From Macrostomum lignano (taxonomy: Eukaryota): 64,000 bases of DNA. This document shows positions 1,324-63,981 of the stretch, piece by piece; the first letter of the stretch is position 1, and the number at the start of each line of letters is the position of its first letter. Position numbers and translations under genes: made by a program. The DNA lies in contig NIVC01001515.1 of assembly GCA_002269645.1 (NCBI GenBank), positions 62,001-126,000 on the forward strand, given 5' to 3'. Under the pieces are notes generated by a model. It had not been told where the DNA came from, did no database searches, and saw only the letters and a program-made list of their open reading frames with translations.

Positions 1324-2110
<787 letters not shown>

Positions 2111-3670: not shown

Positions 3671-4554
3671 TGCATCTGCCGGCTAACAATGCACTGCTAT
3701 GTAATGAGGGGACGATTAGACAAGCTTTTCTTTATAAAGCTTTATCAAACCATGAATAATTCAATCTATCTTTCGTCTGGCTCATATAAACCTAAAAGCA
3801 AGAAGGCTTAAATTCGCGATTTAGTTTTTGCAGACAGTCAGTACGCCTTGAGCACTATTTGAAAAGTGATCTGAATATTGCGAATATTGCAACCTAAAAG
3901 TTCGGATTAATGTCCTCGCGTATTAGGAAACATGACGGCGGCTGTGGAGCATTAGCCATCACTTTCTCACTAATTCGCGAAAATTCGCGACCTACTCGCT
4001 ATGGTGGCAGAGTCACTTGTGAAGCTGGCTCTCTCTGACTGAACTGAGCGCCCGTCTCCGTGCGGGATTAAGAGCTGAGACTATTTTTAAGCAATCTGAA
4101 CGGCGGGATAAGCTGATGGGGGATTTATACTGTCTCGCGATAGACTCCAGCCTGCTCAACCTGATCGAAGGGCGGGCAGTGCGAGCAGCCTGTCAATTTG
4201 ATAATCTCTAATTAGACAAACCAAGGAGATTAAAGCAAGGTTAATATTAGCGACATTAGTCAATCCATCTGTTCAACAGGGCACGCGAATGACTGGATTT
4301 CTTGACAGATTTTTAAAAATGATTGCACGATGGTGCGGGTAACAACAGCGAGTGACAATGCCACGTGAGCTGCCGTAGTGCCCGGGATCTTTTAATGTCG
4401 ACTGTAATTTGAAACCAAGGAAGCGGCAGAGATTAGCTAAGAATTTCACGGGGGATTTTGTGAACTGCATCGTGCGACTGACAGAAATGGAGGCTTTTAA
4501 CAGGGGAGGCTCAGGTAGCTTAAAATGGGCTTAAAACGGTAGGATTTATGCAGG

Positions 4555-9982: not shown

Positions 9983-10537
9983 CGCTGTTGCCTCTTGTTG
10001 TCCGGTGGCCAGTCGAGTCGGGAAGGGAAGTGGCTGAAGGAGTTCGCCAGCTGCCGGTTCATATATAGAGATGGACGAGGCGCGGAGAGGGTCGGGCGGA
10101 GCTTCGAGTCCTGCCGGTGATTTTGCAGCCCTCGACCAATCGCAGGCGCAGGGGACGGAATGTCCACTAGCCGTTCTGTGCATCGCAGCCTGTCCATGGG
10201 TTGGGAGGTGCATTGGAATTGTGAGCAGATTTGTCACTCTTGACGTCAAAGCTAATCAATTTATTCCATTTAACGGTGCTACTGATTGAAGGTGGCATTT
10301 TAGTTTTAAGGTAAGCCATATTAGCTCATTAATGAATAATTTGATGAATCAATAAAGTCAAATTATGATGATGAAGTTACTACTTTAACCTCTTTGAGTA
10401 ACTGAGAAAGTACACCCTGTGTGAGCGTGTGCCTGCGTATCTATCCGTGCTGGGGGGGGGGGTTCAGGGGAACTGGCGTTATTAAGTACGCTCGTATTAT
10501 TATTAAAGGTATTAATAAATTTGGGAGCACGAGAATC

Positions 10538-17039: not shown

Positions 17040-18140
<1,101 letters not shown>

Positions 18141-19071
18141 CAAGAGGATCGCCGCTAGCAAGTGCTGAACACGTCAAAATAAAAAGACGGAGACAGAGAG
18201 CCAAAAAGAAGCAGACAATGAAGCACAGAGCTTGGGAAAGCAACAACAGCAGCAGCGAAAGAAACAGAACTCCACTGATGCAATTTGCTTTGATTCATAC
18301 GAAAGCAGCGTTGTCACGCAAAACGAAAACAGAAGATAAAAAGCAAAATCGCAGCCCTCTCAAGCAATAGATAGAAGGCATTATTCTCTACTTCCTTCTG
18401 TCGGGGGAGGTCCGGTACGCAGGTAAAACAGCCTAACAGTAGAACTACCCATGGTGAGGAAAGGAGACAGATCCAACAGACCATAGATATCAACAAGATT
18501 TGCCCCGCTTGATCAGTGCACAGGCAATACGCTTGTAAACTACTTTTCATTCAGTAGCTTATGCGCATATTGCAGGAGGTAAATATTCAGAGCATGCCTA
18601 CCCGTACAGAAACACTGCAATGCAGACACTCACAATCTTGTAGAAATCTATAAACTTTGAATACATTTGAAAAAGAAACATTTTCTTTACACGTTGATAT
18701 ATGTAAATCACCACAAGTTGAACAGTGAAACGTAGTTGTGAAATGTGTGGAGAGCTGCTCCAGCACAGGCGCAACAAGATTATACAACAAAAAAATGAAT
18801 GAGATGATAGAGTCTGATGCAATTCAAAGTGATAGACAGACACTTTAAACACTGAATGTTGTCAGCATAGCCAGTATGGTATGTGCATTTGCTACTGAGA
18901 AGATTTATTGCGAAGACAAACGATTTTAAATTATTGATAATTATTATATATAGAGAACTACAGCACAATGCCAGACACCGCCAGTCAGGAGAGATAGCAG
19001 CTTATAAAATGACATATTAATTCATACTACTAAGGCAAGTGCCCAGCACTATAATGCATGCATTCTGCAGC

Positions 19072-33807: not shown

Positions 33808-36800
33808 TTAAAGTTCGTCGCGAACTCCCGGGCCGGTCCAATCGCAGCGGCAGTCGCTGTCACTGGGCTGTTTAATATGCTCGTAGCTCTGCGACACGGC
33901 AACCGGACTGCGCAACAATTGGCCGTAACGTTCCAGCACCTGGCCCAGGTAGCACAGCACCTGTTCGGGCATCAGCCGGTTGAGCACGAATTGGCGGCCA
34001 GACTCGCCGATTTTCTCCGCCTGCGAGTCGTGCGCCCGCAGCCAGGCCAGCCGCTCTTCCAAGTCGCCGAGGTCCTCGCGAAGGGGCACGTAGTGCTTCA
34101 TGGGCTCCAGGTCCCGGTAAAAGTGCTCATAATAGTCTGAGTCCTGCTTCAGCACCGGACTGCCGCCGGCTAACAGGAAGGGCAAACGGTAGGCGGCCAC
34201 CGTGCCGTCTATGCTCACCTATGAAGATGAATTGAGTAATGTAGAGAGAAATATTACTTAATAGAAAATGCTAATACTGGGTAGCAGCTTTTTCAACACT
34301 ATATACACATTTTTTGTTGCAGACTCTGCTGCAGAATGAGTCATTGCCGCGATAGAGGGAATGGGTCATTGATTATAGGGAATGGGTCACTGATTATAGG
34401 GAATGGGTCATTGATTTTAGGGAATGGGTCACTGATTATAGGGAATGGGTCATTGATTATAGGGAATGGGTCACTGATTATAGGGAATGGGTCACTGATT
34501 ATAGGGAATGGGTCATTGATTATAGGGAATGGGTCACTGATTATAGGGAATGGGTCATTGATTATAGGGAATGGGTCATTGATTCTAGGGAATGGGTCAT
34601 TGATTCGATGAAATGGGTCATTGATTCTATGAAATGGGTCATTGATTCTATGAAATGGGTCATTGATTCTATGAAATGGGTCATTGATTCTAGGAAACGG
34701 GTCATCATTGATAGAAAATCGGTCACTGATTCTATGGAAAGGGTCATTGCTTAGATGTATAGGGAATGGGTCGTAATTGGGTCGTTACTGTTGCTACGTA
34801 ATGGGTCAATGTTGCTACGTAATGGGTCAATGTTGCTAGATAATGGGACATTGGATTCTAGATAATGAGTCACATTGTTGCTAGAAAATTGGTCATTGAA
34901 TTTAAGAAACGGGTCATTAGGTTTGAGAGAATGGGCCATTGATCCTATGGAATAGGTCATTGATTTTAGGGAATGAGTCACTGTTAAAGATAATGGGTCA
35001 TTTTCTCTAGAGAATGAGTCATCGCATGGTTGTACCTGATACTTGTACTTGAAGAAATCGCCGAGCGGCACGTGTTTCACAATATCGCCCAAAGATTTCT
35101 CGTGCTGAAAGAAGAACATATTAGTCAGTCGAGCGTCCACCAGGTCAGGCTTGGCCATAGACAGTTGGACCAGCTCCAGCCGGCGTTTATTAGAATCCCT
35201 GCCTCTAAAGAACGCCCTGGACAGGCGGTTGGGCCACCTGTAGCGCATGGAATCGTGGGCTGTTCGCATCAAATCATTATAGATTCGATCCATCATGCTC
35301 ACTGTGGCTTCGGTCAGCTCGTAGGTTGGCAGCACAATGTCCGAGGTGTGACGTGAGCCGCACCAGCTTAGAATAGGCAGGTGTGGCAGCCGGTCCAGTC
35401 GGCTGAGCGGCCAGTCGCCCAAGTTCAAAATGAAGTCCAGATCAGGGGCGCGGAATTTCCGCAGCAGGCTCAAAAGCAGAGGGTCGCTCATGAATGTGAA
35501 ACCTGGTGAATTTAATGGGGGTCGACTCTTGATCAAGTTAACGCTTCGGTTTTATTGAAGCTCAGGTCAGACAGGGGCATAACTTTTAGCCAGGAATTCT
35601 GGGGGCGGGGGGCGCTTCTATGGGGCGCCATTTCATTTCAGTGAAGGACACAGTAGTATAGCCCAAAGCTGCTGTCAAGGGGGCGCCCAAGCTGCTGTCA
35701 AGGGGCGTCAAAGCTTCTGTCAAGGGGCGCTAAAGCTGCTGTCAAGGGGCGCTAAAGCTGCTGTCAAGGGGCGCTAAAGCTGCTGTCAAGGGGCGCCAAA
35801 GCTGCTGTCAAGGGGCGCCAAAGCTTCTGTCAAGGGGCGCTAAAGCTGCTGTCAAGGGGCGCCAAAGCTGCTGTCAAGGGGCGCTAAAGCTGCTGTCAAG
35901 GGGGCGCCAAAGCTGCTGTCAAGGGGGCGCCAAAGCTGCTGTCAAGGGGGCGCCAAAGCTGCTGTCAAGGGGCGCCAAAGCTGCTGTCAAGGGGCGCCAA
36001 AGCTGCTGTCAAGGGGCGCTAAAGCTGCTGTCAAGGGGGCACCAAAGCTGCTGTCAAGGGGCGCTAAAGCTGCTGTCAAGGGGGCTCCCAAGCTGCTGTC
36101 AAGGGGCGCCAAAGCTGCTGTCAAGGGGCGCCAAAGCTGCTGTCAAGGGGCGCTAAAGCTGCTGTCAAGGGGGCGCCAAAGCTGCTGTCAAGGGGCGCTA
36201 AAGCTGCTGTCAAAGGGCGCTAAAGCTGCTGTCAAGGGGCGCCAAAGCTGCTGTCAAGGGGCGCCAAAGCTTCTGTCAAGGGGCGCTAAAGCTGCTGTCA
36301 AGGGGGCACCAAAGCTGCTGTCAAGGGGCGCCAAAGCTGCTGTCAAGGGGCGCTAAAGCTGCTGTCAAGGGGCACCAAAGCTGCTGTCAAGGGGGCGCCA
36401 AAGCTGCTGTCAAGGGGCGCTAAAGCTGCTGTCAAGGGGCGCCAAAGCTGCTGTCAAGGGGCGCCAAAGCTTCTGTCAAGGGGCGCTAAAGCTGCTGTCA
36501 AGGGGGCACCAAAGCTGATGTCAAGGGGCGCCAAAGCTGCGGTCAAGGGGCGCTAAAGCTGCTGTCAAGGGGCGCCAAAGCTGCTGTCAAGGGGCGCCAA
36601 AGCTGCTGTCAAGGGGGCGCCAAAGCTGCTGTCAAGGGGGCGCCAAAGCTGCTGTCAAGGGGCGCGAAAGCAGCTGTCAAGGGGGCGCCCAAGCTGCTGT
36701 CAAGGGGCGCTAAAGCTGCTGTCAAGGGGGCACCAAAGCTGCTGTCAAAGGGCGCCAAAGCTGCTGTCAAGGGGCGCAAAAGCAGCTGTCAAGGGGGCGC

Positions 36801-37908
36801 CCAAGCTGCTGTCAAGGGGCGCTAAAGCTGTCAAGGGGCGCCAAAGCTGCTGTCAAGGGGCGCTAAAGCTGCTGTCAAGGGAGCGCCAAAGCTGCTGTCA
36901 AGGGGCGCAAAAGCAGCTGTCAAGGGGGCGCCCAAGCTGCTGTCAAGGGGGTGCCAAAGCTGCTGTCAAGGGAGCGCTAAAGTCAATTTTTTATCAGGGG
37001 CGCCATATCCTTTTATTTGTCAATAAGAGTGAAAAACACGGCCCCTTGCCCTTTTGAGGTCAAATAAGATAGTTGAAATGGTCAAAAAGACCTCATGAAT
37101 TATGTGTTTTCTCTAAGCGAAAACAATATTAAGGTATATTCTGCAGCATAGAGTCTTCCACTCTAGTAGCAATTGACCGCAAAAAGTGTAGCACAGCTGA
37201 CTGGGGGTTATCTACATTAACTGCTATTCTTAGCCAACAGTACTAACCAGTATGCTTGCCAAAGCAGCTTCTGTACAACTCGTTGTCCTTAATAACGTAT
37301 CGACAATAGGCGTAAGCCCCGTCATTATCAAACCGCTTGGCAGCCTCGGCGGCCACTATAGGCATCTGGATGCCGGCTGGGCCGGAGAATCGGGCAAAGT
37401 CGGCCTCCAATTGGCTGTAATTGAACGACCTGCAGCCGTGATAATCTAGCCAGCCGGACAAGTCCATCTGCGGACAATTGCACTGCTCATCCCTGAGCGG
37501 GCCAGACAGGCGGTAAGGCGACTGGGCTACCGGCATGCCAAAGTAGAACACAGACAAGCTGGCATCGCTGTGCACCGTCTCATGCAGGCGGTAGCGCAGG
37601 ACGTACAGGCCGCCGCCAAGTCGGAGCGCCTCGCTGGTGTAGCGAAGTCGGCGATCTTCCGAGCCTGCGGCGCTCAGCTCCAGCCGGAGGGCGTCGCTGT
37701 CCACCTCAGGCAGGCTGGCATCGTCCAGCTGACGGCCGGCAGTGTCGCGCATCTGCACGAACAGGTAGCGAACTGGCAGAGTCCGGCGGCCGTCGAGGCC
37801 GGGCCCGAACACCAGAAAGTTGGCCGGGTCGGGCAGCGGCCCGGAGGCGGCAACTGCAAAACTGAGCAGGCAAAATGCCGGCAGCAACAGCAAGGCTGAC
37901 AGTCCCAT
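33808..37908 (-). CDS. KDELC1: KDELC/POGLUT2-3-like protein O-glucosyltransferase (filamin-like Ig domain + GT90/CAP10); 3 exons 37908-37248, 35502-35036, 34218-33808; ~512 aa
   Basis: Signal peptide; VFGPGL..LPVRYLFVQ filamin-type repeat; CNCP; [68 protein letters not shown]; C-terminal ER-retention signal RDEL. Intron phases match. Confidence 0.93.
34355..34990. repeat. 21-bp minisatellite (gggaatgggtcattgattata) filling KDELC intron 2
   Basis: Perfect copies grade into degenerate copies. Confidence 0.93.
35665..36980. repeat. 21/22-bp minisatellite (ggggcgccaaagctgctgtcaa) in KDELC intron 1
   Basis: About 60 copies. Confidence 0.98.
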
Positions 37909-38661
37909 TGCAATAGGAAAACGACAGGGAGATCGCAAAGCCAGGGCAGCAAGTGGATCGGATAGATTTAAGCCTTAAGAATGGCTGCAACACGCTATAG
38001 AGCACCGCCAGCTGTCGCTTCCAAGCCAGCCCCAAAAATTTCCTTCTCTGCCGCCTTCGGTACTCAGTGGATTAATTTAATCACCGCACAGAGTAGTGAA
38101 TGAAGGAAGAGATTTAGGGGCAGCCGGCGCCCTCGCAGCTCCCGTTGCTGCTGGCTGTGCGAAGCAGAATGTCTGTAATTAATTCAGAATTTGCATCGAA
38201 GTCAATTAGTTTCTTTCTGCTATTATTTCTGAGAGCAGGATTTGTCGCACATGTGGCCTAGGTCATGCGTAGAATGGCTTGGAACTAAGGATGGCCTTGT
38301 CACTAGCTACTTATTAAAGTAGAAATCTTGCCCCCACACATTGAATGCAAATAGGTACGACAACATACGTTATTCAAAGGAAATAGTTGCAAATTAAGGT
38401 ACTCGTCGTGTTATACAGTGTAATCTTTTAAGATAGATTAAGATTCTACTTAAAAAAGTCATAGAGGTATGTGTAAGAGTAAAAATTCTGGTTCGTAAGT
38501 AGTTTCTGTTGGATAGCGATCGCAAACTTTTCCTGTATTAATCAATAGACTAATTTTCAAACCACTGATACATTGGTGATAGTTTGATAAACTGAACGAA
38601 GTCTGACAGTAATCAAAGGGTAAAACTGAATTGATAAAATTTCTCTATAAATTATGATTAA

Positions 38662-39265
38662 TCCAGCTACAGAAGGGGTGCCAGCTACAGGAAGGGTGCC
38701 AGTTAAAGAGGAGGCGCCAGCTACAGAGGGGGCACCAGCTACAGAGGGGGCACCAGCTACAGAGGGGGCACCAGCTACAGAGGGGGCACCAGCTACAGGA
38801 AGGGTGCCAGTTAAAGAGGAGGCGCCAGCTACAGAGGGGGGGGCAAAAGCTACAGAAGGGGGCATCTGCTACAGGAAGGGTGCCAGTTAAAGAGGAGGCG
38901 CCAGCTACAGAGGAGGGGCAAAAGCTACAGAAGAGGGGCATCTGCTACAGAAGGGGGGCACCAGCTACAGAGGGGGCACCAGCTACAGAGGGGGCACCAG
39001 CTACAGAGGGGGCACCAGCTACAGAGGGGGCACCAGCTACAGGAAAGGTGCCAGTTAAAGAGGAGGCGCCAGCTACAGAGGAGGGGCAAAAGCTACAGAA
39101 GAGGGGCAACTGCTATAGAAAGGGGGGGCACCAGCTACAGAGGGGGCGCCAGCTACAGAGGAGGTGCCAGCTACAGAGGGGGCACCAGCTACAGAAAGGG
39201 TGCCAGCTACAGAGAGGGCACCAGTTACAGAGGGGGCACTAGCTACAGAGGGGTGCTAGCTGTAG
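38662..39265. repeat. 18-bp minisatellite (ccagctacagagggggca) with higher-order blocks
   Basis: Direct tandem array. Confidence 0.93.
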
Positions 39266-42200
39266 AGGCAATTCTTAGTATACAACAATTGTATAATTAT
39301 GTAGCACAGTGAAAGTGAAAACAAAAACTATAATAACTTTTATTTAAGAATCTGTTGAAATAGAATATAAATTTGTTTCTTTTGAATTTCCAATCTGCTC
39401 ATGAATGTTACTTAAAAACAATTTTTGCCATGGACAATCTAAATTGAACTTTATTTGTTTTAATAGAAATGGACTTTGTTTGAATTGAATTTCCACAAGA
39501 GCTGAGATTTCTTAAAGTGTTTAAATTGAAGTTTTGCTTGTTTCTTTTGAAAAAGACTTTTATACATATTATGTAATCCCAATATACTAAATCACTAAGA
39601 TCTTAATAGACTAAATATATTATATAAATGAAGATATATTAATATATGAGATTATTTATATAAGCCAATGTAATATGAAATATATAATACATCATGATAT
39701 CATATATAGATAATAATAGATAATTTCTAAAATAAAAATTTTTGATAAGTATTTAAAAAATATTTTTAAGAATGGTTTTTGCTAAAAACTAGAATAATAT
39801 AGAGTCTAGACTATGTGATATATTAACTATGCTAATGCTATGATATATGTCTCTATACAAAATGTTAAATTTCTATTATATAGACTTGAGTTTCAATGCC
39901 ATTTCATACATACATTGTCAATTTGTCATCATGCAATACACTAAATGTGCCAAATCAAAGACCAACAAATCGAATCCCTTAATTAAATTTAGGCCAATTA
40001 AGCCATGTATACAGTATGCTTTATGTATGATCTGTATCTGTAGTGTATGGGCCCTGGTCATTCATATTTTGGTTTTTACATAGTGATCATAGTAATCATA
40101 GGAGCAGGCATAATGAAAATATTCATGTTTAGAAAGTTTCATGTCAATAGCTAAAAAATGTGCATGCAGTAAATTTAACGAACGATTCTGCAGGATACCT
40201 TTATATCATATTATTTTGTATTATTGCTTAAACAACTAAAAATTCGAAAATGCTGAAGTAGCGAAACTAAATTAGATAATGTTATATAGCGTAGGAATAG
40301 GCTTTGTTCTGGAGGTTCATTTTTTGTCATATTTTTGGGGTTTTACTTATTTAATTGTACATGTATTTTCTCTTTATTTAATGTACATGAGCCAACCCCC
40401 CTCGATTTGCTAACCCCACCCCACGTTAAATAATAATTAAAAAGGGCGTGATTTTTGGTCAGCGTGTTTTTTGCTAACTTGGTTGTTTTGTTTTGCCTGC
40501 GCGAGAACGCAGAGGTATTGAAGCCTACAAGCATTCGATTTTTGCCTACTTAGTTATTTTTCGGTTTCGAAGAGTTAGTCGATTTAACAGGCTTCGCATT
40601 TTCTATGCGGGTCCACCCGGCATGATCGATCTGGATAAGGCATGAAACTATCGGGGCAAAGTCAAAACGAGGGCATCGCGAGTTTACACCATTCAAACTT
40701 TGTAATACCAAATTGTATCTGTTTTCTAATGAGTATGGCCGGTTAAATCTTGCATTAAACTGTGAATTATAAATAATTTTACTATAATCTAAGTAAAATT
40801 AGTCTTTTTCGCTCCTCTAAAAGACAAAATATGTCCTTTTCAGCGATAATTTTTTTGGCGGAAATTCAACCACGTTGAACACGTGTGAAAAAAATTCTAT
40901 ATAATTTACAAATAAGGGCTAAAAATGTATGAATTAATGTAGTTGGTGAAAGTTTTAAGTTAATTTGCATTAAATGCATGCATGAGTAATGCTTTATTTG
41001 TATAAACCTTACTGTAGTTCGAATATTCTTCGTTTTGGTAGTAAACATTGATTATGACATCCCACCTATATGCTCATATGAGAATATGTTAAAAACTAAT
41101 CTAAATTGATGTATCCAATTGGATTATTCACTTTTACATTTTAGAAAATAATTTAGCATAAAATCGATGCTTTTTATTGAAAAAGCCTAATATATTACTT
41201 ATTGTATAACCATTCTATAACAATATAAAAATACTTTTTAATAGTTAGAGAGCACAAAGTGATTTTCTCCAGTAGTCTGTTGCATCAAAATGAATAATTG
41301 CCAGCTTTTAGAATTGAAATATGTTATTACACACCTATCAAGCTTGAAGCATTTTTTTTCTTTACTAAATGGTACTCTTTGTTGGCTCTTAAATGCCATA
41401 AATGTTAGTTTTTGTCATGATTTTTTTCTCCGGAAGCCCACTGTGTGGAGCATGTACAATGAAAAGCTTAGATATTTCCTCAAGGCACTGCAAAGAACCC
41501 TATAAAGAAGCATTTTTTTGGCTTTGCAGCAGGGACAACCTAATATAATTTTATTGCCATTTAATGTATATTTTGTAATGAATTAGGCTTTATTTATTTT
41601 TAATGATAGTTATTCTGCTTATTTCATACTGAATAATTTGAGGTAAATTTTGTAAAAATTACTTTAAACATCTTTTTATTGACCATCACTTAAAATTTTT
41701 TATGACTAGCAATTCTAGTCTAAGATCACCAGATTAATCAGATTTCACTTACTAACACCAAATAATCAGGTCTGATTGACTTTAAATTTACTTTAAATTC
41801 ATTGGTCTGCTTAACTGACATCAGATTTACCTAGGATCAATAATTTTGGGGCATCATGAAGGTTATAGCATTGTAACAGACTATGTAATCATGCTTAAAT
41901 AACTTGGAACTCATAATTTAATATCTTGAAATCTGCATGGTGCTAGAATCCTATTGGAATAGAAAGAAGACAGCAAAAAATACAGACAAAGTGTTCACTC
42001 ATTATCTCTCTAATAATAAAATGTTCATCTCCACAGATGTACCTTTCAGCTGTTTGGAAACGGAATGAAAATAAAAATCGCTACAAATCGCTACACGCAG
42101 CAACAACTTGTGTCAACATAATTGACAACCATTGTAGAGAACCCCACCTCTTATGTTCGGCGGGTAGTCGATCAGAATCCAGTCTGGCGCATCGCTGCAA

Positions 42201-45200: not shown

Positions 45201-45639
45201 GTATTTTTTCCTAACAGTAGAAATTAATAATGCTATAAACTGTATTTCTTAACTATATTGATAGACAAATATTTCATCTAGTATATTAGTTATTAGAATA
45301 CTTTTTTTATTTTTTAAAACAAATTGTCTAGATAATAGATTAATTATTAGTTTATAATTAACTAATATATATAAATAAAACTGAATTAGCACAATAACAC
45401 TACAATAGCTCATCTGTGACTATAAGACCTAGGACAAATATTTGATTCTAAAGCAAAAGCTTAGACCACTACCCCAACCAAAGAAAAATCTTGTCCATGC
45501 CACTGGCTACTAGCAACAAACCTAATCATTCAACTATCTTTCCCTTGTTAGTTGCATTCCCTAGCTACTTCTCTACTTTCCCTACCTAACCTACCCTAGC
45601 TTGCCCTTCTTATTCCCTTGCTGTCTATCTAATCCACTG

Positions 45640-47820
45640 CTCCCTCTAGCTAATCCCAGCTCTACCTAGCTATACAATGCTCGCCCTAGCTACCCCTTGC
45701 TCTCCCTAGCTATACCCTGCTCTCCCTAGCAACCCCTGCTCTCCTTAGCTACACCCTGCTCTCCCTAGCAACCCCCTGCTCTCCTTAGCTACACCCTGCT
45801 CTCCCTAGCAACCCCCTGCTCTCCTTAGCTACACCTAGCTCTCCTTAGCTACACCCTGCTCTCCCTAGCAACCCCCTGCTCTCCTTAGCTACACCCTGCT
45901 CTCCTTAGCTACACCCTGCTCTCCTTAGCAACCCCCTGCTCTCCTTAGCTACACCTTACTCTCCTTAGCTACACCCTGCTCTCCTTAGCAACCCCCTGCT
46001 CTCCTTAGCTACACCCTGCTCTCCCTAGCTACACCCTGCTCTCCTAGCAACCCCTGCTCTCCTTAGCTACACCCTGCTCTCCTTAGCTACACCCTGCTCT
46101 CCTTAGCTACACCCTGCTCTCCTTAGCTACACCCTGCTCTCCCTAGCAAACCCCTGCTCTCCTTAGCTACACCCTGCTCTCCCTAGCAACCCCCTGCTCT
46201 CCTTAGCTACACCTAGCTCTCCTTAGCTACACCCTGCTCTCCCTAGCAACCCCCTGCTCTCCTTAGCTACACCTAGCTCTCCTTAGCTACACCCTGCTCT
46301 CCCTAGCAACCCCCTGCTCTCCTTAGCTACACCTTGCTCTCCTTAGCTACACCCTGCTCTCCCTAGCAACCCCCTGCTCTCCTTAGCTACACCCTGCTCT
46401 CCTTAGCTACACCTGCTCTCCCTAGCAACCCCCTGCTCTCCTTAGCTACACCCTGCTCTCCCTAGCAACCCCCTGCTCTCCTTAGCTACACCTAGCTCTC
46501 CTTAGCTACACCCTGCTCTCCCTAGCAACCCCCTGCTCTCCTTAGCTACACCCTGCTCTCCCTAGCAACCCCCTGCTCTCCTTAGCTACACCTTACTCTC
46601 CTTAGCTACACCCTGCTCTCCTTAGCAACCCCCTGCTCTCCTTAGCTACACCCTGCTCTCCTTAGCAACCCCCTGCTCTCCTTAGCTACACCCTGCTCTC
46701 CTTAGCTACACCCTGCTCTCCTTAGCAACCCCCTGCTCTCCTTAGCTACACCTTACTCTCCTTAGCTACACCCTGCTCTCCTTAGCAACCCCCTGCTCTC
46801 CTTAGCTACACCCTGCTCTCCCTAGCTACACCCTGCTCTCCCTAGCAACCCCCTGCTCTCCTTAGCTACACCCTGCTCTCCTTAGCTACACCCTGCTCTC
46901 CTTAGCTACACCCTGCTCTCCTTAGCTACACCCTGCTCTCCCTAGCAAACCCCTGCTCTCCTTAGCTACACCCTGCTCTCCCTAGCAACCCCCTGCTCTC
47001 CTTAGCTACACCTTACTCTCCTTAGCTACACCCTGCTCTCCTTAGCAACCCCCTGCTCTCCTTAGCTACACCCTGCTCTCCTTAGCAACCCCCTGCTCTC
47101 CTTAGCTACACCCTGCTCTCCTTAGCTACACCCTGCTCTCCTTAGCAACCCCCTGCTCTCCTTAGCTACACCTTACTCTCCTTAGCTACACCCTGCTCTC
47201 CTTAGCAACCCCTGCTCTCCTTAGCTACACCCTGCTCTCCCTAGCTACACCCTGCTCTCCCTAGCAACCCCCTGCTCTCCTTAGCTACACCCTGCTCTCC
47301 TTAGCTACACCCTGCTCTCCTTAGCTACACCCTGCTCTCCCTAGCAAACCCCTGCTCTCCTTAGCTACACCCTGCTCTCCCTAGCAACCCCCTGCTCTCC
47401 TTAGCTACACCTAGCTCTCCTTAGCTACACCCTGCTCTCCCTAGCAACCCCCTGCTCTCCTTAGCTACACCTTGCTCTCCTTAGCTACACCCTGCTCTCC
47501 CTAGCAACCCCCTGCTCTCCTTAGCTACACCCTGCTCTCCTTAGCTACACCTGCTCTCCCTAGCAACCCCCTGCTCTCCTTAGCTACACCCTGCTCTCCC
47601 TAGCAACCCCCTGCTCTCCTTAGCTACACCTAGCTCTCCTTAGCTACACCCTGCTCTCCCTAGCAACCCCCTGCTCTCCTTAGCTACACCCTGCTCTCCC
47701 TAGCAACCCCCTGCTCTCCTTAGCTACACCTTACTCTCCTTAGCTACACCCTGCTCTCCCTAGCAACCCCCTGCTTTCTCTAGCTATACCCTGCTCTTCC
47801 TAGCAACCCCCTGCTCTCCC
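45640..47820. repeat. 20/21-bp dimeric minisatellite (ctctccttagctacaccctg / ctctccctagcaaccccctg), ~2.2 kb
   Basis: About 105 copies of two alternating unit types. Confidence 0.98.
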
Positions 47821-47967
47821 TATCTACGCCGTGCTGACCCTAGAAAGTAGGTACTCCCTAGCTGTTTTATGATTTTGTTACTGAATTGGTTTTGATTTTA
47901 GTAGAGTTGACAGTTTTTAATTCTAGATTCGCATATTTACGTAACTATTATTTTTTCAGTGTTCCAA

Positions 47968-50387
47968 ATGGGCCGCAACAGCTACAGTGAGTTCCAAAAG
48001 AAGGCAAAGAAGTTTAGTAAGTTTGTTTACTTTATTTTTTTCTGTACGAGTTATACAGTTTATTGTTTTCGTTGAGTTTCTGACACATTTGCCAAATTAG
48101 GGTAGTCATTCAAGATGTTAGGACTTTTACTTTACGTCTTTAAGTTGTATACTGACCCCTTGTACTGTAGATTAGGACTATGTGTAGCCGCGGGGTCCTT
48201 TTTACCTGGCCATCTTTCGCACTTCTTTAGCATGTTTAAATTAATGAAATATTTTTTGACATACTGGATGAGACCCTATGATAAGCATGTTCATCTTGCC
48301 AAATGCAGATCACCAGTCATCAGTGGCTGCCGCCTACAAAGCCCTTTCAAAACAGGAGAAACAAGCTCTTAAGGAGGATGCGTCAAGGCAGCCAATGCCG
48401 CTAAAAACGATAACAAATGAGGTATTGCTTATTATGATTTGGACAGTTTCTTCTTTACTGTAAGTCCATTTGTTTCGAATATCCCCATTCCTGATTATAC
48501 ATTTTTATTGGTACTTTTAGCTTCGAAAGTTCGGAAAACGTTTTCTGCTGGTTATGGTCGATGAGACGAGTGACTACAGTTTTGTGTGTACTCAAAAGCA
48601 AGACGCAAAGATTTTGCAGCCAATCGGAGACGACGTTATTAAGGTAAATGGTCTTTATAATTTAACATAACTTCCGCTTAATAGAAACTCCCATCTTTGA
48701 CACACAGTACCCAACTTTTTATACGCAATTCTGATTTCTTACTTTTGTTGTGAGTACCGCATACTGAAACCCGATACATTTTTATCTGTCTTTCAAGAGC
48801 GTTACATTAAATACATACCAGTTATTCTTCCTCTTTGTCCCAGCGTTTGTTTCAGATAGGAGATGTCTCGAGTGGCTGCCAGCTGAAGGATTTAGAATCC
48901 CTGAGGCGTGCCGTGCGCGAAAGAGCCACGAATTTATATCGTGAGTGGATTATGCTTGCATAACGCTCAGCATTCACTGTTGTGTTCTTGGAGCCTGCTC
49001 TTGTTTCAGTGGAGGATCAGATCACTTTGCTTACTATAATCATAACTGCGTGTATTTCTAAGTAATACACATCTCTATCAAAATCGACTGGTACTATTTG
49101 ACTTTTGTCAATTTGACTGTGGACAATTTGACTGCCATCAAAATGACTGCTGAAAAATGAATGTGGACAAAAATACTTAAATTGACAAAAAACTTTTGAC
49201 TTATCACCGTAAGTGGGGTGAAAACGACTTAAACTGATTAATTGGAGCGTCATTTTGTCAGCAGTCACATTGCTCGACAGTTAAATTGTCCCCTGTCAAA
49301 TAGACTGGAGACAAAGGTCAAATTGTGCCAGTCAATTGTCGTGCACCCATTCGATAAGATTGTATAAAAGAAGTGGCAAGGAAGCGGTCAAAATATACTT
49401 GCATCTCTTCATTTTTAGTGAAGCTACTAATTACTATGGGTTCTCGTATATTTTTTCCTCAGATTCGGCTGGACTCACTGGAGACGTTAAATGGACGGCA
49501 CTGGAGCGCGACACTTTGCGGAAAGCCAAATTCGAAGTAGAGGGTTTCTTTGTACCTCCGTTAAAAAACCCGTCCGTCATGAAAGTCACCGAGTGCAAAG
49601 AAGCTCTGTCGGCGGATTTGCAATTTGTAAGAAGATCACGTGGAATAAATCTAGATGATACTGCAGCTACTCTAGTAAGAACCTATATTCTCTCATTTAA
49701 TGTTTTCTTATTTCTGTTGACCACAGTTGGTTTTCGTTGTTTTCATTGTTTACCAACTGTGACAATCGAGTTATTTATTAACTGTCAAAAGAAGTATTGA
49801 TTTAACGTCAAATCTCAATCAAAATAAAAGTCCAATCTTTCACTTACGGTAAGAAAGTAGTGTCCCTGTAGCATTCAAAAAAGTTTCACGTCATACTTTT
49901 AAGTGATTGCTAATTGTGAATTTCGTCTTTCATAACTTCAAAACGACTCATGAAATATCTTCCTTAGATGGCCACAGAGTCTGATTCCAACGTTGAAAAT
50001 GCCGCTGCAATGGAAGTGCCGGAACAGACCGCGGCGAGCCATGCTTCGGTGGCTTCGATTTGCAGCATTGTGTCTGCGGGCGCTTCTCTGACGAGTGATG
50101 GTTTGCTGTTCGTTTGGGATATTGATCAGCACACAACAGCTAAGGAGTATGCTGTATGTCTCGCTTTGCGTGACTCTGTTGGCCCTCGGCAGCATATGTT
50201 TAGTCTTGTGTACCGTGGCTCCGAGAAAAGCTGCCTAATAAAACAAGAAACGCTTTCGACTGCCTTTATAGTGGCAGAAAACAACGAGTCACTATTGTGG
50301 CTTCGTATTGCGATTCAGGACGATTGTGGCTGGTCTCCGGTAACGAATTTTCACGTGAAAGTTGACGGACTAATTAATCCGAACTAA
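47968..50387 (+). CDS. 6-exon gene: HMG-like helices + TFII-I/GTF2I-like N-terminal domain and I-repeat + FN3-like domain; exons 47968-48016, 48309-48421, 48521-48643, 48844-48940, 49463-49674, 49968-50387; 337 aa
   Basis: Five GT-AG introns with phases 1,0,0,1,0 give one stop-free 1014-nt ORF. The domain calls come from remembered consensus motifs; see findings. Confidence 0.7.
49078..49340. mobile_element. MITE with imperfect ~85-bp TIRs rich in atttgac motifs, in intron 4 of the above gene
   Basis: gactggtactatttgacttttgtc..gactgctgaaaaatga on the left pairs with tcattttgtcagcagtc..gacaaaggtcaaattgtgccagtc on the right. Confidence 0.6.
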
Positions 50388-50427: not shown

Positions 50428-50752
50428 TAATAATTGATAATAATTAATACTTCATTACACCCGTCCTAATTTGGCCAGATGTGCAGCCGACAGCACAGCC
50501 GCAGCTATTGCGCGGTGCATCTCAAGATTGCATACAGCTGTTCAGTCCATGGCCCTAGCTAACTGGCCCTCGCCAGACCCACCCTCAATTACCCCAGCTA
50601 ATGCTGGCACCCATTTTAACAGCTGCGTGAACTGAAGCAATGCAGAGTTTAGTGTCTTGCTGAAGGACACAAATTGTACCAGAGTGGAGTCGGGAATCGA
50701 ACCCCCGACTTTCAAGTCTTGAGTCCGACTCTAACCACTGGGCTGCAACCCC
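50428..50752 (-). mobile_element. tRNA-derived SINE (family 2) with a CORE/MIR-like central domain
   Basis: A-box GCAGCCCAGTGG, B-box GGTTCGATTCC, then GTGTCCTTCAGCAAGACACTAAACTC..GCTTCAGTTCACGCAGCTGTTAAAATGGG. A second copy lies at 59601-59910. Confidence 0.8.
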
Positions 50753-53926: not shown

Positions 53927-54818
53927 CAGTGAGCAAAACTGCCAGGAGTGCAGAATCGGCGCCAGAGATGTACTTTGTGCATTCTAGGTTCGCCAAGCGG
54001 CTCGGGTGATGAATCATGCGGTCTCGATCTGATGTTCGAGTTAGCCTATCAGCGCTATAGGAGAGGCTAGTTGGCGCGTTGAAGGCCAAAAGTGCATATC
54101 TTCGTATTTAGCAATGTACACGTACTACACGTAGCTACCCCGTAGACTCGCCACAACAAGAATCCCCTGCTGAAGTCCCCTACTGTACCTGCATGGCCAA
54201 TGCGATCAAGTCCCAGCAGTGTCCCTTATCATCGGCTATGACTTCGAGATTGACAGCAACTCACTGCACGTTGCTTAAGCAGCGAACATTAGAACCCCAG
54301 AAGGTGCAGGCCGTCACATGTCTGGTACATGTAATACTCTAGCCGATGCTAATGCAATGCGGATCTAATCCGCAGACTAAGCTAACCCGCTGCCACCAGC
54401 CCGTGCGTCCTGGCTCAACAAACCGGGACTTTCGAAATCGGGCTTCCGACTAGAGGGGGCTTTGCACGTACCTGCCAACTAGTGTCTTTTTGCTGTCAAT
54501 CTCGAAGTCATAGCCGATGATAAGGGACACTGCTGGGACTTGATCGCATTGGCCATGCAGGTACAGAGGGGACTTGTGAAGGGGATTCTTGCAGTGGCGA
54601 GACTATGGGGTAGCTACATGTACTGTTACATTGCTAAATACGAAGATATGTACTTTTGGCCTTCAAGGCGCCAACTAGCATCTCATAGCGCTGATAGGCT
54701 AACTCGAACATCAGATCGAGACCGCATGATTCATCACCCGAGCCGCTTGGCGAATCTAAGAGTGCACAGAGTACATCTCTGGCGCCGACTCTGCACTACT
54801 GGCAATTCAGTCTGACTG
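53927..54818. mobile_element. Foldback element: ~330-bp inverted arms (53927-54259 / 54490-54818) around a ~230-bp spacer
   Basis: The arms are reverse complements, with long perfect stretches such as gcatggccaatgcgatcaagtcccagcagtgtcccttatcatcggctatgacttcgagattgacagcaa. Confidence 0.9.
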
Positions 54819-55144
54819 CTGTTGTCTGTTGATGTTGTCGGCATGATTTAATTGGTTTGATTCAGATTTCATGTGATAATTGAATGAATTTGCAACACGT
54901 AATGATGAATAGTCTAATTTTTTAATACGATCAACCATATACATGTAGGCATGATAGAGACCCCAAGATACTTTAATTTCCAGTCATAGGATTTCAGAAG
55001 TCATAGGATTTCAGAGCCACAAAATTAAACGAAAAGTGTCGCAATATGTCGGACTAGGTACCCTTAAAATTTGTCTACTTGGCTTTAAAAAATCTCGAGT
55101 CAATGCGTGCAAGATCCAACGGCACTGACTAGCCTATTTCAGTA

Positions 55145-57073
55145 AGGGGATGTCAACTTAAGCACCAGAATGGAGCCCGAAGTTTAGCTCCAGACCAAAC
55201 CGACTGGAATCGATAACTTGTCGACCCAGACGACTAGAATCGCCGAGACGTCCCATCCGGGTCCCTTCCTTGGGATACCAGGGGATAAAGGGGATAAAAT
55301 GGGGATCTCATGTCAACTTAAGGCTCTAGAATGGAGCCCAAAACAAGGCTCTCGACCAAACCGACTGGAATCAGCAGATTAGACATTGTTATCGAGAACT
55401 CAATGGCAAAGTACAACCGGGCACATCCAGGTTTTGAATCATTGAAACAGCTGCCACCGTCATGGACAGGGCTATCGTTGTTCGAATTCGGTTAGAATTT
55501 CATGCGCCGAGTGTTCTTGTCCAACGAACTGGACGAAATTGAGCAGCTGCAATTCAACTGTGATCTGACGCGTGCTAACTCCTCTGCTAACACAAGGGCA
55601 TTGATTTCCGTCAATCCGCTGGTCCAAGGGCATGGAGATCCAAAAAGCTGGGGGTTCCCCCGAATTCACACAGAGAATTTGACAGAGGTTTCGGTGGGTT
55701 CGTATCAACTAAATCAAGCCGATGATTACATTCAAAACATTCGTGTCAAAAAGGTTCTCGGTAGCTATACGAAGGTGACTCCTGAAGAGACTTTCAGTCG
55801 CTCACATCCGAACATCTGAGCCACCTGAAGTGTTGGAAGTTTCGGCAAGAGTCGTCCTAGTCAGAAAACTGGAGCAACCTATTCGGTCGGTGGCATCCGT
55901 CTTGGATTTTTCTAGCTGTCGTTTTCTCGCGCCATGATTCGAAATCCTACCGCGTGATTCTTAGAGTGTGTGACAGCAGCGGACAATCGCTTTGGTTTTA
56001 GAGATCCAGGATTGCAACTTCTTCATGGCTACTATTCGTCTGCAAAAGCTGGAAATACGACTGCAGGCTGCGATTGTCATGTAATGGCAGTGCTCAAACT
56101 CCTGGGCTGCAACGCTTACCACCAAGATAGCTATCGAAGGTCTGGTGCTAGCCTTTGCTTTGTTGATTCCGCTCTTCCACGCAGGCTTGTTGGCAGACTT
56201 TATACCAGAGAAAATGCTTTACCACAGCAGCGAAGGCCTACTGAGCAACAGTCTAGCAGACAGCATAAGGAGTTACAGTCAGCCAGCAGCAGCTCACGAT
56301 CCAAGCCTCAGCCTTCAAGACTCTTTGGTCTTCAAAACCATGGTCAGCAGTGCTATACGCAATTGTTGTTGCACAACTGTTTCACTGCATCAGCAGCGAA
56401 GTCCAACTCCTTCAGCCGGTCAGAGGTAGAGCAGTGAACACCGCAATGACCAACCTGATGACATCTATGGCGACTGGACCAGCAAGCGTAGATCAACTTG
56501 TCAAAGCTATCCGAAGCCGATATCCGCAGCAGTTGTCGCCAAGACAGCAACACTGCATGAACGAGGTGCTACAGTGCATTCTGTCAGAGTTGCAGCTGCA
56601 GCGTCATTGCCTAAGCGAATTTATACTAACCGTACGTGCGGTAGTTGCCTGATTAGCACGGAGGAGCTGCTCATAGGAGTTCTGGATAATTGTATCCTCA
56701 GAATCTCCTTGCAGGAGTTTTCAACCGCACTGTTAACTCTAGACTGTCTCTACGCTGCTTTTACGTCACCAAAGCACGTCCCATGCACCAACACCAACTA
56801 TGCAGCTGATAGTGCGCTGGAAGCTCAAGTCTCTAACGGCAGAGTGACTCTGATGCAGAGTGTCCGGAGCTGAACTTCGGGCTCCATTCTAGAGCCTTAA
56901 GTTGACATGAGATCCCCATTTTATCCCCTTTATCCCCTGGGACCCCAAGGAAGAGACCCGGATGGGACGTCTCGGCGATTCTAGTCGTCTGGGCCGACAA
57001 GTTATCGATTGCAGTCGGTTTGGTCGGGAGCTGAACTTCGGGCTCCATTCTGGTGCTTAAGTTGACATCCCCT
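55145..57073 (+). mobile_element. 1.93-kb TIR DNA transposon (195-bp TIRs, TA duplication) carrying decayed PIF/Harbinger-ISL2EU-like transposase C-terminal sequence and a USP peptidase fragment
   Basis: 55145-55339 is the near-exact reverse complement of 56879-57073, and TA flanks both ends. Internal motifs: FPRIHTENLTEVSVGSYQLNQADDYI, FSRHDSKSYRV, GYYSSAKAGNTTAGCDCHVMAVL (SWIM-like), GLQNHGQQCY, QQHCMNEVLQCIL, TCGSC..EE, DCLYAAFTSP. Confidence 0.85.
56320..56870 (+). pseudogene. Frameshifted, C-terminally truncated ubiquitin-specific protease (peptidase C19) domain inside the TIR element
   Basis: Cys box GLxNxGxxCY, a QQD-box-like motif, fingers CxxC (TCGSC) and an L.DCL..FT.PE-like motif occur in the correct order over three frames. 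The His box is absent. Confidence 0.65.
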
Positions 57074-57076
57074 TAG

Positions 57077-59600: not shown

Positions 59601-59910
59601 GGGGTTGTAGCCTAGTGCTTAGAGCATCGAACTCACGACTTAAGGTCGGGGGTTCGATTCCCGACTACACTGGTAGAATTTGTGTCCTCAAGCAAGATAA
59701 TAAACTCTGCGTTGCTTCAGTTCACCCAGCTGTCAAAATGGGAACCAGCAGCTGGGGTAATTGAGGGTGTGTGTGGCGTCCCCCCAGTCAATGGACTGAA
59801 CAGCTGTACGCAGCCTTCAGATGCGCTGCGCAATAGCTGCGGCTGTGCTGTCGGTTGCACATCTGGCCCAATCCGGCCAGGTGTAATCAATTACTAAATT
59901 ATTAATTATA
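59601..59910 (+). mobile_element. tRNA-derived CORE-like SINE (family 2), second copy
   Basis: GGGGTTGTAGCCTAGTGC A-box, GGTTCGATTCC B-box, CORE-like block and AT-rich tail. Collinear with 50428-50752. Confidence 0.8.
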
Positions 59911-60307: not shown

Positions 60308-63300
60308 TCAATCACTTTCTGAGCCTTCTTCGTCTTCTAGGTCTCCTAGGCTCGACGACGTTGAAGACTGATCTTCCCTTGCCAGGTCGATATATTCATC
60401 AAACGTATTGGGAGCGTGAAGGGTGCGCTGTACAGTCTCCACCTTGCGAAGAAGCTCTATGAACATCATTCTGAACTGAGCATCGAGGCCTTGAGCATCA
60501 CGAAACTGTGACTCCGCTTGAATCAGGCGGTGTTGCAAATCGTGTACCTCTTGGCGTAGCATGACGCCTTCCTCCTTGAGGCGGTCAGAACGACTGCTGG
60601 CATCGATGATGCGTTTGCGCAACAAGCAATCTAGTCCGCTCTGGCTCTGACCACAAGAAATGAAGACTTCGCCTTCAGGATCTAAGAAGTCTTTCATCGG
60701 TGCCCGCTGTGTAGGTGGAAGACTGCCAATAGATCTTCGAATCTTAATTCTCAGCTTCTCTAGGCGACGAACTATCAGCTGGCAGTCTCGTTGGCCATAG
60801 GCAGTACGCATTTTGCGAAGTAAAAACTGAGATTCGGTCGCGTAGGATCGCAGGCGCTCTAGAGCAGAAGCAGGCCTATTAGAAGCCAGGCGATCTTCCG
60901 ATAAAAATTGCTTGCCCAGTTCAATCAGAACGGCAACGTCGGATGCTGCAATGAAAATATAAGAAATAAAATAATGGGCTCTGCATATTTCTCTAGCAGC
61001 GTGAGCAGCACACGACAATGAAATGAGAATTTTGTATTAGCAGCAGACGAATAGACAAGAAAATTACACATGTTCGAATCTGCAAAAACTAAAAAACAGA
61101 GCGAGGTACCAAAGAAAAAACTTTACAGTCTCACCTTGTGGCACGGAAACTAACAGCTCCTTTAATTCTGTGCTTAGTGCGTCGGAATGCTTCTTGTGCA
61201 GGCGGAGCCGACAATTTAGCCAGTCTGCTACAGGAAGAAATAAAAAAGTATGACCGCTGTAACTACGTGAAACAAAATGCTACTACTTGAAACTTGAATG
61301 CTTTGTTTTAGTTGCATTGTTGATTTCTGGCTAATATTTAAACTTTGAAGCTCTAGTCCCAATCGACACTAGAAAATTTTTTATCCCCAAAATTGGACTT
61401 TGGTTCTTAGTCACTGAAGTACTGCGACTTTATATATTGATGAGAAAAGGTGTTTAACAATACCTGTATTTAGAAGCTGTGTCGCATTTAGATGCCTGAT
61501 AACATAGGCCAAAAAGAAAGTACGCCGGTCCAAGCGCATCTCTTTCAATTGTGGGCCATATGGTCGAAGCAAGGCGTTAATGCGCTCGCAGTGTTCGCCG
61601 TCGGTCAGACCGCAGCCTTCGACAACTCGAACAGAGTGACGCAGCTGGAAAGGTTCAGGAACAAAGATAACTTGGTTCAGACAATACTTTTGCTCGTGCG
61701 AGAGCCCACTGAATTCTCTGCAAACAACTGCTCGAGATAGTGCATGTATATACAGGAATCTGAAATACTTAAGAAAAGAGCATTCATTTTATACATGAGG
61801 TCACAGAAAGCACTGTCGATTGGAAGTTTTTTTATGAATGATCACAAAAACAAACGGGCTAAAATTCTAGCTTACGTAGCATATAATGAATAAATAGGCC
61901 TAATTAAAATTCTAACCTGACACTTTGTCTGATGACCGTAAGCGTGAAAGGCGTTCACTGCAGGCGTAATTCTTTCCGTCGATGTTGAGTCTTCCGCGAT
62001 GGCCTGCAATCGGCTCCCGATTTTGCAAGCAACATCATATATAAAAATAAGATTCCGTGCTGCTGGCTGGTTGCGTAGATAATACTTTAGGCAATATTCA
62101 GCATAGGCGAGACGCTCGCCATTTGACCGAATATCAGCACAAGCACCAATAAAATTGTGACGGCAGCTGATAGCGAAGAAACCGTGGATATCGAGTCCAG
62201 CTCTGCCGCCACGTACCAAGTCACCAGCATGAAAATTAGAACAAGCATCGTTTGTCTGGTTACTGGAAGCATCTGTTGATCTATTTTCCGGTACATGGAC
62301 AAACGGAGCTGGCAAAACTCCGTTAGATGGTAGAACGTCCTGTTTATTGCCGGCAGAGCTCTTGCGCCGAAGACCAAAAATGCCGTCAGCTGCTAGAATA
62401 GTAGGACGCTCGGTGCACTCCTAAACAATTAGAACCGTGGCGATTTTTACGACTAATGCAGATACGTTGCATAATAACATTTTTGCTAATTCAACAAACA
62501 AATGCGGTCGCTTTTTAGGACATTTAAAAAATAAAGTGCCCCGAACTTTTCTCAATTCTGCCTGTACAACTATAAAAAACAAGAAAGTGTAAAATAATTA
62601 TTATACTTACACTGTTTGGACACAGCATGCAATTCGTCGGCCAAAAAGTGACATCCAGAATTAACTGACGGTAGCGCTGCATAGTGCCATGACGATAAAA
62701 GGATTGATAGAGGTTGTTAAAATTCTGAAAATAGCAACATGTGAGTCATTAAACAAGTATTTAACCTTTGTTGTGACAATTTTTTTATTCATTCTAAGCC
62801 TAACAAGGCTTCATTCGAAAGTTTCCTCTATTTACGTATTAAGGAAAAAGGAAAGTCATGGACAGTATGCTCAGCTTACGTACCGTTAGCTGGGCCCTTG
62901 AAAATGTCCCAGAGAGCAGAATCGTCCGGAGAGCTTTCCATAACGACAATGTCCCTTCGCACATTAGACTGTCGATAAGTTCAAGCAATCTAATGTCCAC
63001 GAAAGAGACAGGATCCTGTTTGCTGATTGGGAAGTAGCCCTGCTTCAGGAGACTATCCGTCGAGCAGTTCGCACAGAGGGCAAAGTCAGCAGAGATTTCT
63101 GCAAAAGTCGAAAAAGTGTAAAAACACATCTCATGCAGAAAGAATGCATATTAAAGTACACTATAGGTTGAGAAGAGTTATATTCTTTTATTTCACGTGT
63201 AATATTACGTAAAGAATCTGATTCTGAACATCACCGAAAAATTATAGCAACTCTTACCCCCATGCTCGTCAATAAGCGAAATGGCGAAAGTGTGCCCAGC

Positions 63301-63981
63301 TACAGTCGACTCTGAGCAACAAGTCATCTTGGGCCTCGTTGGAGCTGCTTCGGTTGAAAACAAATTGCCCTAAGAGTTGAAAGGTAAAGAATTTACATTA
63401 CTTTGTGAGGGCACCAAATTTTCATTAATTTGATGAGCTGGCCTTAATATTCAATTATGGGAATGTAAGATATAAAATTAGAGTACTTAAAAATTGTGAT
63501 ACAAAATATAAAAGGAGTAAATTACATTCCACTCCAGGAATCGATGCGGAAGGAATTGACCATGTGACAACTCTTTGCAATCCGAGCAAAATTGGACTCT
63601 GCAGTTGCAGCAAAAAAATGTGGCGAAGTTGCATCGGCATCTAATACACATGGACTGCAGAAAGAAATACTTGAAGTTCAACGAATATGTCACAGGATTC
63701 TCCGAGATGTCCCAGGGGATGGTCGACGCCACTGTTGACTCTAGATCTTCTGACGAGTGTACTTCTGACGATGATGATGGAAATATATAATCAGCACCTT
63801 CGCCACGAACACCACTACCACGATCGCCTCCTCCTCTGCCACGAGCACCTCTACAAGGAGCGCCACCGCCATGAGCACCTCCGCGAGAAGCGCCACCGCC
63901 ACGAGCACTGTAGCAAATATAATGGTGAGTGCCTTCACCTCGGACCCCTCTGACATAAAGTTTCACGGCGTGCCTCCTCAT
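60308..63981 (-). CDS. KDZ (Kyakuja-Dileera-Zisupton) transposase with CxC-type zinc domains; at least 8 exons: 63981(or further upstream)-63526, 63369-63258, 63098-62884, 62724-62611, 62420-61917, 61644-61464, 61227-61135, 60945-60308; ~770 aa
   Basis: CxxC..A.F.C.NC...FCSDC...H...PHR..EWNG; C.NC....LLKQGYFP; C.LCP; ADGIFGL (D); CSNFHA; D..G....CRH; GE...Y; YDVAC (D); FHAYGH..CQ; EGCGLTDGEHCER (E); R...EE...L..E. All seven introns are GT-AG and in phase, with no internal stop. Confidence 0.9.

Follow-up and report, generated by a model that had tools for sequence, protein, structure and literature searches.

We analysed a 64,000-nucleotide stretch of the Macrostomum lignano genome (the window; contig NIVC01001515.1 of assembly GCA_002269645.1, with window base 1 corresponding to record base 62001) and describe here a gene on its forward strand, Mlig013527.g1, at positions 47968-50387. 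Six exons and five introns splice to an open reading frame (ORF) of 337 amino acids (aa); the start ATG lies at 47968, a TAA stop ends at 50387 and the spliced coding sequence (CDS) is 1014 nt long. The spliced translation is identical to a GenBank protein (P0001), 'hypothetical protein BOX15_Mlig013527g1 [Macrostomum lignano]'. We estimate at roughly 0.75 the probability that Mlig013527.g1 is a genuine, transcribed and lineage-restricted M. lignano gene, whose product joins an orphan N-terminal region, an acidic linker and a fibronectin type III (Fn3) domain of the HCF type. An earlier prediction for this locus (the original prediction) had read the same exons as an HMG-like and TFII-I-like protein with a C-terminal FN3-like part. 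The gene is laid out as follows:

47950-47959 (+): attttttcag, a pyrimidine tract with a final AG, 8 nt upstream of the ATG
47968-48016 (+): exon 1, start codon, aa 1-16 plus 1 nt; donor GTAAGT
48309-48421 (+): exon 2, aa 17-54; lysine-rich helical segment with the 'YKALSKQEKQALKE' motif, the HMG-like stretch of the original prediction
48521-48643 (+): exon 3, aa 55-95; the segment previously likened to the TFII-I N-terminus
48844-48940 (+): exon 4, aa 96-127 plus 1 nt; in-frame alternative acceptor at 48856
49463-49674 (+): exon 5, aa 128-198; shares the supposed I-repeat with the 3' end of exon 4
48901-48940 plus 49463-49635 (+): supposed I-repeat, aa 115-185
49968-50387 (+): exon 6, aa 199-337 plus TAA; linker, then Fn3 domain
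49968-50078 (+): acidic linker rich in alanine and serine, aa 199-235
50079-50363 (+): HCF-type Fn3 domain, aa ~236-330

All five introns (5/5) follow the GT..AG rule with pyrimidine-rich acceptors, their phases being 1, 0, 0, 1 and 0, and the GC content is 47.5% in the exons versus 34.9% in the introns. No stop interrupts the 337 codons of the coding frame, each of the other five frames contains 11-20 stops, and the longest open stretch among 1000 nucleotide shuffles of the CDS reached 162 codons. The GenBank annotation of GCA_002269645.1 was derived from a genome-guided RNA-seq transcriptome in which ORFs were called by TransDecoder, and transcripts overlapping repeat annotations were excluded from that gene set (PMC5730564). 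Because the annotation was built from an RNA-seq transcriptome, its agreement with our splicing gives the junctions independent transcript support. The gene, already annotated as a hypothetical protein, is thus real and transcribed. The six-exon, 337-aa ORF had been predicted with exact coordinates and a translation equal to this RNA-seq-derived model, and all the peptide strings quoted at the time are present in the product.

Two details of the transcript may vary. The end of intron 3 holds two in-frame AG acceptors 12 nt apart, the annotated one at 48844 and another at 48856; since both are in frame, alternative use is possible, and acceptor 48856 would give a 333-aa isoform without the residues RLFQ. 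The attttttcag tract upstream of the ATG could be the acceptor of an intron in the 5' untranslated region (5'UTR) or of spliced-leader trans-splicing, which concerns ~39% of M. lignano genes (PMC5730564). A tblastn search found no paralogues within the 64-kb window, and the identifier 'Mlig013527' was absent from the literature text and the M. lignano paper supplements that we searched.

What is the C-terminal domain? By sequence comparison it is a divergent copy of the second, complete Fn3 repeat of the HCF Fn3c element. Three HCF entries headed the phmmer matches in the PDB, all aligning residues 234-322: 2M26, the C-terminal domain of mouse HCF-1, with E 2.4e-4; chain B of 4GO6 (SAS1 of HCF-1), with E 1.1e-3; and 1WFT, with E 0.023, the C-terminal Fn3 domain from the mouse 1700129L13Rik protein, which we take to be HCF-2. 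The C-terminal 112 residues scored 25.1, 19.0 and 27.5 bits against HCF-1, HCF-2 and a two-sequence profile, the maxima of 5000 shuffles being 8.6, 12.8 and 8.1, respectively. A profile search with the Fn3 domain returned 510 proteins; the 120 matches listed were short HCF exon fragments, those few with source names were vertebrate, and no flatworm HCF was identified among these 120. A hidden Markov model (HMM) built from 37 of the HCF fragments, with the query left out, gave the protein 30-33 bits versus a maximum of 8.4 in 5000 shuffles.

Profile-profile and pairwise comparisons agreed with these scores. Hhalign of the Fn3 domain against the HCF alignment, carried out only with alignments that did not contain the protein itself, gave 96% (E 2e-9), and BLASTP against single HCF fragments gave E values of 2e-11 to 6e-7, always within residues 230-325. 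Fourteen columns are invariant in the protein and in 37/37 HCF rows, namely E258, Y259, L263, A264, Q273, F276, G282, C287, A297, R311, I312, G319, P322 and T324, and the conserved positions belong mainly to the structural core (EY, LA, Q..F, VY.G, SC, L..A.I, RIA, G.P.T). AlphaFold2, supplied with the HCF-fragment alignment, predicted residues 232-331 as a seven-strand beta-sandwich with a predicted local distance difference test (pLDDT) score of 85-95. The PDB structures that Foldseek ranked first for this model were 4go6_B (superposed over 101 columns at 1.9 A), 4go6_D, 2m26 and 1wft, with E values between 1e-7 and 3e-5; generic Fn3 domains came after these four. The FN3-like C-terminus of the original prediction was therefore borne out, and phmmer, HMM, hhalign, BLASTP and Foldseek together refine it to the HCF type.

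The N-terminal ~190 residues, in turn, are basic, predicted to be mostly helical and, as judged by the searches, an orphan. With residues 1-198 as the query, a word-indexed search covering 5.8e9 proteins returned only the protein itself at E<=10. An exhaustive phmmer search of 1.84e9 cluster representatives added a single repetitive protein (P0002, 1929 aa, E 9e-6), which we rejected as a spurious relative: it matches the low-complexity linker five times. Neither Pfam nor the PDB gave an accepted relative for residues 1-198; the Pfam matches to AAA_13 (17 bits, cut-off 36), WD40_WDHD1_1st and a uL24m-like model were discarded, being far below their cut-offs and confined to a helix rich in lysine and glutamate. 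We also rejected a decayed second Fn3 domain at residues 130-190. This idea came from the similarity of 'LQFVRR' to the HCF sequence 'LAFVRV' and from a W..F..F spacing; hhalign gave it 0.7%, and BLASTP of the middle of the protein against the C-terminus found nothing. Helices are predicted at residues 5-14, 20-27, 31-41, 48-56, 92-99, 112-129 and 140-151, with short strands at 63-65 and 75-77, and in the AlphaFold2 model made with the alignment the N-terminal region reaches a pLDDT of ~80 only at residues 21-40. A single-sequence AlphaFold2 model of the whole protein, with a mean pLDDT of 37, was set aside, as Foldseek found nothing for it at E<=0.001 and its matches were meaningless. The linker of ~45 residues is acidic, rich in alanine and serine, and of low predicted structural confidence. 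The isoelectric point (pI) and the number of charged residues change along the chain:

Residues 1-45: pI 10.0, 10 K+R
Residues 106-190: pI 9.6, 16 K+R
Residues 191-240: pI 4.1, no K or R
Residues 241-337 (Fn3 included): pI 5.1, 8 K+R, 12 D+E

We consider this structural description of the protein highly probable. A functional inference, comprising an interaction role for the Fn3 domain and a binding role for the N-terminal region, is tentative and drawn by analogy. The Fn3 repeats of HCF are a protein-interaction module that holds two subunits together, and the Fn3 domain of Mlig013527.g1 would likewise mediate interactions between proteins. For HCF-2, subnuclear localisation is directed by the Fn3c element on its own (PMC6582346), and by this analogy the site of action would possibly be the nucleus. 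The basic N-terminal region would supply a lineage-specific partner- or nucleic-acid-binding activity. The binding partner itself cannot be carried over from HCF, because the conserved residues lie mainly in the core and the surface positions differ: the HCF residues EPP, C281, H298, D300, N316, K318 and Y320 are replaced in the protein.

Several points weigh against the reading of an orphan N-terminus joined to an HCF-type Fn3 domain. The structural match to HCF is partly circular, as the alignment given to AlphaFold2 was made of HCF fragments; the sequence statistics of the Fn3 domain are independent of that alignment. The generic Pfam fn3 model, which the original prediction had proposed as a check, found no match to the domain, either in the whole protein or in three separate pieces. 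Among the HCF fragments listed, fn3 annotation is itself limited to the longer ones, and those checked include the first-repeat half. The function is deduced from one domain only, and we found no expression, localisation or interaction data in the literature. A classical nuclear localisation signal was neither sought nor found.

Could Mlig013527.g1 instead be a single-repeat invertebrate relative of TFII-I, with an HMG-like segment, a TFII-I N-terminal domain, an I-repeat and an Fn3 domain, and possibly represent an ancestral mobile GTF2I module? By eye, residues 115-185 share L1, R2, V5, E7, Y13, A16 and V39-E40-G41 with I-repeat R1 without gaps, and the predicted helix 112-129 lies at the place expected for I-repeat helix 1. 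We nevertheless regard such a relationship as extremely improbable, since none of the profile comparisons supported it. In the Pfam searches of the whole protein and the three pieces, GTF2I (PF02946) had no match at E<=10, and phmmer searches of all PDB sequences with the whole protein or with residues 1-198 gave no match to a TFII-I chain at E<=10, although the library contains ten I-repeat chains. An HMM built from five solved I-repeat chains scored -0.6 bits on residues 110-191, a value equalled or bettered by 406/2000 composition-matched shuffles (20%), and hhalign against the I-repeat alignment gave a probability of 0.05%. BLASTP against residues 1-650 of human TFII-I, in a sequence whose R1 repeat is identical to PDB 2DN4, reached E 3.8 at best; the alignments put forward in the original prediction had E values of 38 for the N-terminal region and 29-33 for the I-repeat.

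The conserved columns of the I-repeat lead to the same view. The five solved I-repeats have 16 invariant columns (L1, V5, L8, F9, A16, P26, G41, L42, P43, R49, P51, G55, L59, I62, I69 and F71), of which the segment keeps 4/16 in register (L1, V5, A16 and G41) and loses the other 12. Ten of these (L8, F9, P26, L42, P43, R49, G55, L59, I62 and I69), which include the hydrophobic core and the GLP motif, are lost, and P51 and F71 are recoverable only with two gaps opened. With and without an alignment, AlphaFold2 gave residues 106-230 a pLDDT of 28-69, a low confidence that arises because no homologues cover the region, and the Foldseek matches come from the Fn3 part only. The resemblance to an I-repeat is of the kind readily produced by visual alignment of two 70-residue segments. 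Neither the I-repeat nor the TFII-I N-terminal domain of the original prediction thus survived the sequence comparison. The original prediction had named the lack of a profile or structural match as its refutation, and on the profile side this is what was observed. Had the TFII-I reading held, a transcription-factor family of vertebrates would have been traced back to the invertebrates and tied to transposons.

The HMG-like reading of the N-terminus fared no better. HMG_box had no Pfam match under the same search of the whole protein and its three pieces at E<=10. An HMM made from eight HMG boxes (the sequence used for HMGB1 box A was verified) scored 4.4 bits on residues 1-70, which 80/2000 shuffles reached (4%), and only 21 residues ('AAAYKALSKQEKQALKEDASR') align, to the 'WKaLSeeEK' part of the HMG box. 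Because the segment before Pro45 is too short, at ~40 residues with only short predicted helices (5-14, 20-27 and 31-41), there is no three-helix HMG box of ~70 residues. We judge Mlig013527.g1 to be an ordinary gene of restricted lineage whose Fn3 module is divergent and of the HCF type, and neither a TFII-I relative nor an HMG-box protein.

The surroundings of the gene are indeed rich in repeats and transposons, as had been predicted: they hold a satellite, an insert resembling a miniature inverted-repeat transposable element (MITE), repeats resembling short interspersed nuclear elements (SINEs), palindromes and an element with terminal inverted repeats (TIRs). The features near Mlig013527.g1 are:

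45637-47835: 20-bp satellite, consensus CTGCTCTCCTTAGCTACACC, ~110 copies, 86% match, strong C-over-G skew
49094-49315: palindromic MITE-like insert in intron 4, inverted arms of 24-38 nt, 77-83% complementary, with 'TTTGAC/GTCAAA' units
50444-50752 and 59667-59897: ~300-nt repeat in two inverted copies of 86-87% identity
53937-54807: palindrome, nested and nearly perfect, 90-99% complementary in arms of up to 82 nt
55143-57075: 1.9-kb element with 200-nt TIRs, 96% complementary
60308-63981 (-): multi-exon KDZ transposase gene, 777-aa annotated product, running off the window end

The 20-bp satellite ends ~130 bp upstream of the ATG. The ~300-nt repeat is probably a tRNA-derived SINE: one copy contains a tRNA-like stretch at 50682-50752 (-) with a sub-threshold match to the Rfam tRNA clan (16.8 bits), and ARAGORN found no tRNA near the gene. 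This copy lies 60 nt past the stop codon and may overlap the 3'UTR of Mlig013527.g1. The palindrome at 53937-54807 and the 1.9-kb TIR element look like non-autonomous DNA-transposon structures.

Elsewhere in the window, long tandem arrays at 1158-3686, 17581-18246, 21402-23058 and 38602-39315 create artefactual long ORFs; they comprise 'SIYL', 'ISITICQ' and 'SVCL' repeats, a proline-rich repeat and an 18-bp array. Host-gene exons at 8013-10249, 23139-23717 and 34751-37938, all on the reverse strand, belong to a rhodopsin-family G-protein-coupled receptor (7tm_1), a PDZ exon (Pfam PDZ, E 2.8e-16) and a glycosyltransferase of family 90 (GT90). We read the PDZ exon as presumably Dishevelled-like and take the GT90 gene to be POGLUT/KDELC-like; the latter also has a weak Filamin-repeat match (E 1.3e-4) below the Pfam cut-off.

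Is Mlig013527.g1 then a passenger, or a part, of the neighbouring transposon? The transposase gene at 60308-63981 (-) encodes a KDZ (Kyakuja-Dileera-Zisupton) domain (E 1e-21), a CxC2 cysteine cluster and, near the N-terminus, a weak B-box-like zinc finger, and the inverted copies of the ~300-nt repeat (50444-50685 and 59667-59897) bracket the interval between both genes. The two genes are, however, convergent and separately annotated, with 9.9 kb between the KDZ gene and the stop codon of Mlig013527.g1. The repeat copies look like two SINE-type insertions that sit in the interval between the genes instead of enclosing them, and no repeat pair enclosing both was found in the 64-kb window. Moreover, in the protein collection searched the protein is the sole member of its 90% cluster and was seen on one contig, unlike a multicopy element, and the GenBank gene set to which it belongs left out repeat-overlapping transcripts (PMC5730564). 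Membership of the KDZ transposon thus seems very improbable, and, with no sign of linkage, the 'mobile ancestral module' that had been tied to it has no support.

More room must be given to the possibility, which we hold to be a minority one, that Mlig013527.g1 is a young chimera formed within Macrostomum, in which a duplicated and heavily diverged HCF Fn3 exon was joined to de novo or unrecognisable N-terminal exons. The entire Fn3 domain and the linker do lie in one exon, the N-terminal 198 residues are without any relative, and the gene sits amid satellites and transposon debris. In addition, the Fn3 domain is equally distant (23-34% identity) from every sampled HCF, while a further 20 columns, beyond those invariant with the protein, are common to the 37 HCF rows at >=90%. 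Against recent capture, an identity of 25-34% points to an origin long ago or to very fast divergence, the exon boundaries do not match the vertebrate pattern, in which this Fn3 repeat sits in a single exon, and neither a paralogue nor an intermediate turned up, the HCFs compared including no M. lignano HCF. A transcribed ORF without a maintained protein function, be it decaying or a spurious coding call on a spliced transcript, is less probable still, and we think it unlikely. No orthologues were found that could show purifying selection, and the literature yields no expression or phenotype data; opposed to this are the 337-codon frame kept across five introns, set against the shuffle maximum of 162 codons, the intact and recognisable Fn3 core, and the difference in GC content between exons and introns.

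On the preferred reading, what was a 'hypothetical protein' becomes a non-HCF protein with an Fn3 domain of the HCF type, which is a modest gain in annotation and makes Mlig013527.g1 of possible use to work on orphan or chimeric genes. We speculate, with reserve, that it might be a Macrostomum-specific chimera of an otherwise HCF-exclusive Fn3 repeat and an N-terminal domain that is either new or diverged beyond recognition. If this were true, the gene would be an example of birth by exon capture in a flatworm genome that is rich in repeats and was recently duplicated, and its N-terminus could be a previously unseen fold.

How does the protein compare with known systems? With the HMG box it shares the 'YKALSKQEKQALKE' stretch, which resembles the helix 2-3 junction motif 'WKxLSxxEKxxY', but the 'SYSEF' stretch stands 13 residues closer to this motif than is the case in HMGB1 box A. 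The likeness to the I-repeats of TFII-I, GTF2IRD1 and GTF2IRD2 (PDB 2DN4, 1Q60, 2ED2, 2DZQ and 2DZR) consists of a few residues picked out by eye (LR..V.E.....Y..A ... VEG ... PS ... FV), along with a helix where the segment begins; those proteins carry an array of repeats, whereas here there is a single candidate segment. The HCF family is defined by a Kelch domain together with a half-repeat Fn3n and a one-and-a-half-repeat Fn3c, which interdigitate (PMC6582346). In the 337-aa protein, Pfam found no match to Kelch, only 235 residues precede the Fn3 domain, and nothing upstream of residue 230 matched the HCF half-repeat, half-repeat-bearing HCF fragments aligning only at 238-325. Unlike HCF, the protein is without Kelch, Fn3n, the Fn3c half-repeat and the basic, acidic and HCF-PRO regions, nor was the HCF nuclear localisation signal seen, for which no search was made, and its 337 aa contrast with the 2035 aa given for human HCF-1 (PMC2814863). 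Because it has neither a Kelch domain nor a half-Fn3 repeat, it is not an HCF orthologue. Its repeat is only 25-34% identical to those of HCF, whereas animal HCFs are far more alike there; yet residues ~236-330 align with HCF-1 and HCF-2 across the entire second Fn3c repeat, and on this comparison Mlig013527.g1 carries an HCF-type Fn3 domain although its product is no HCF protein.

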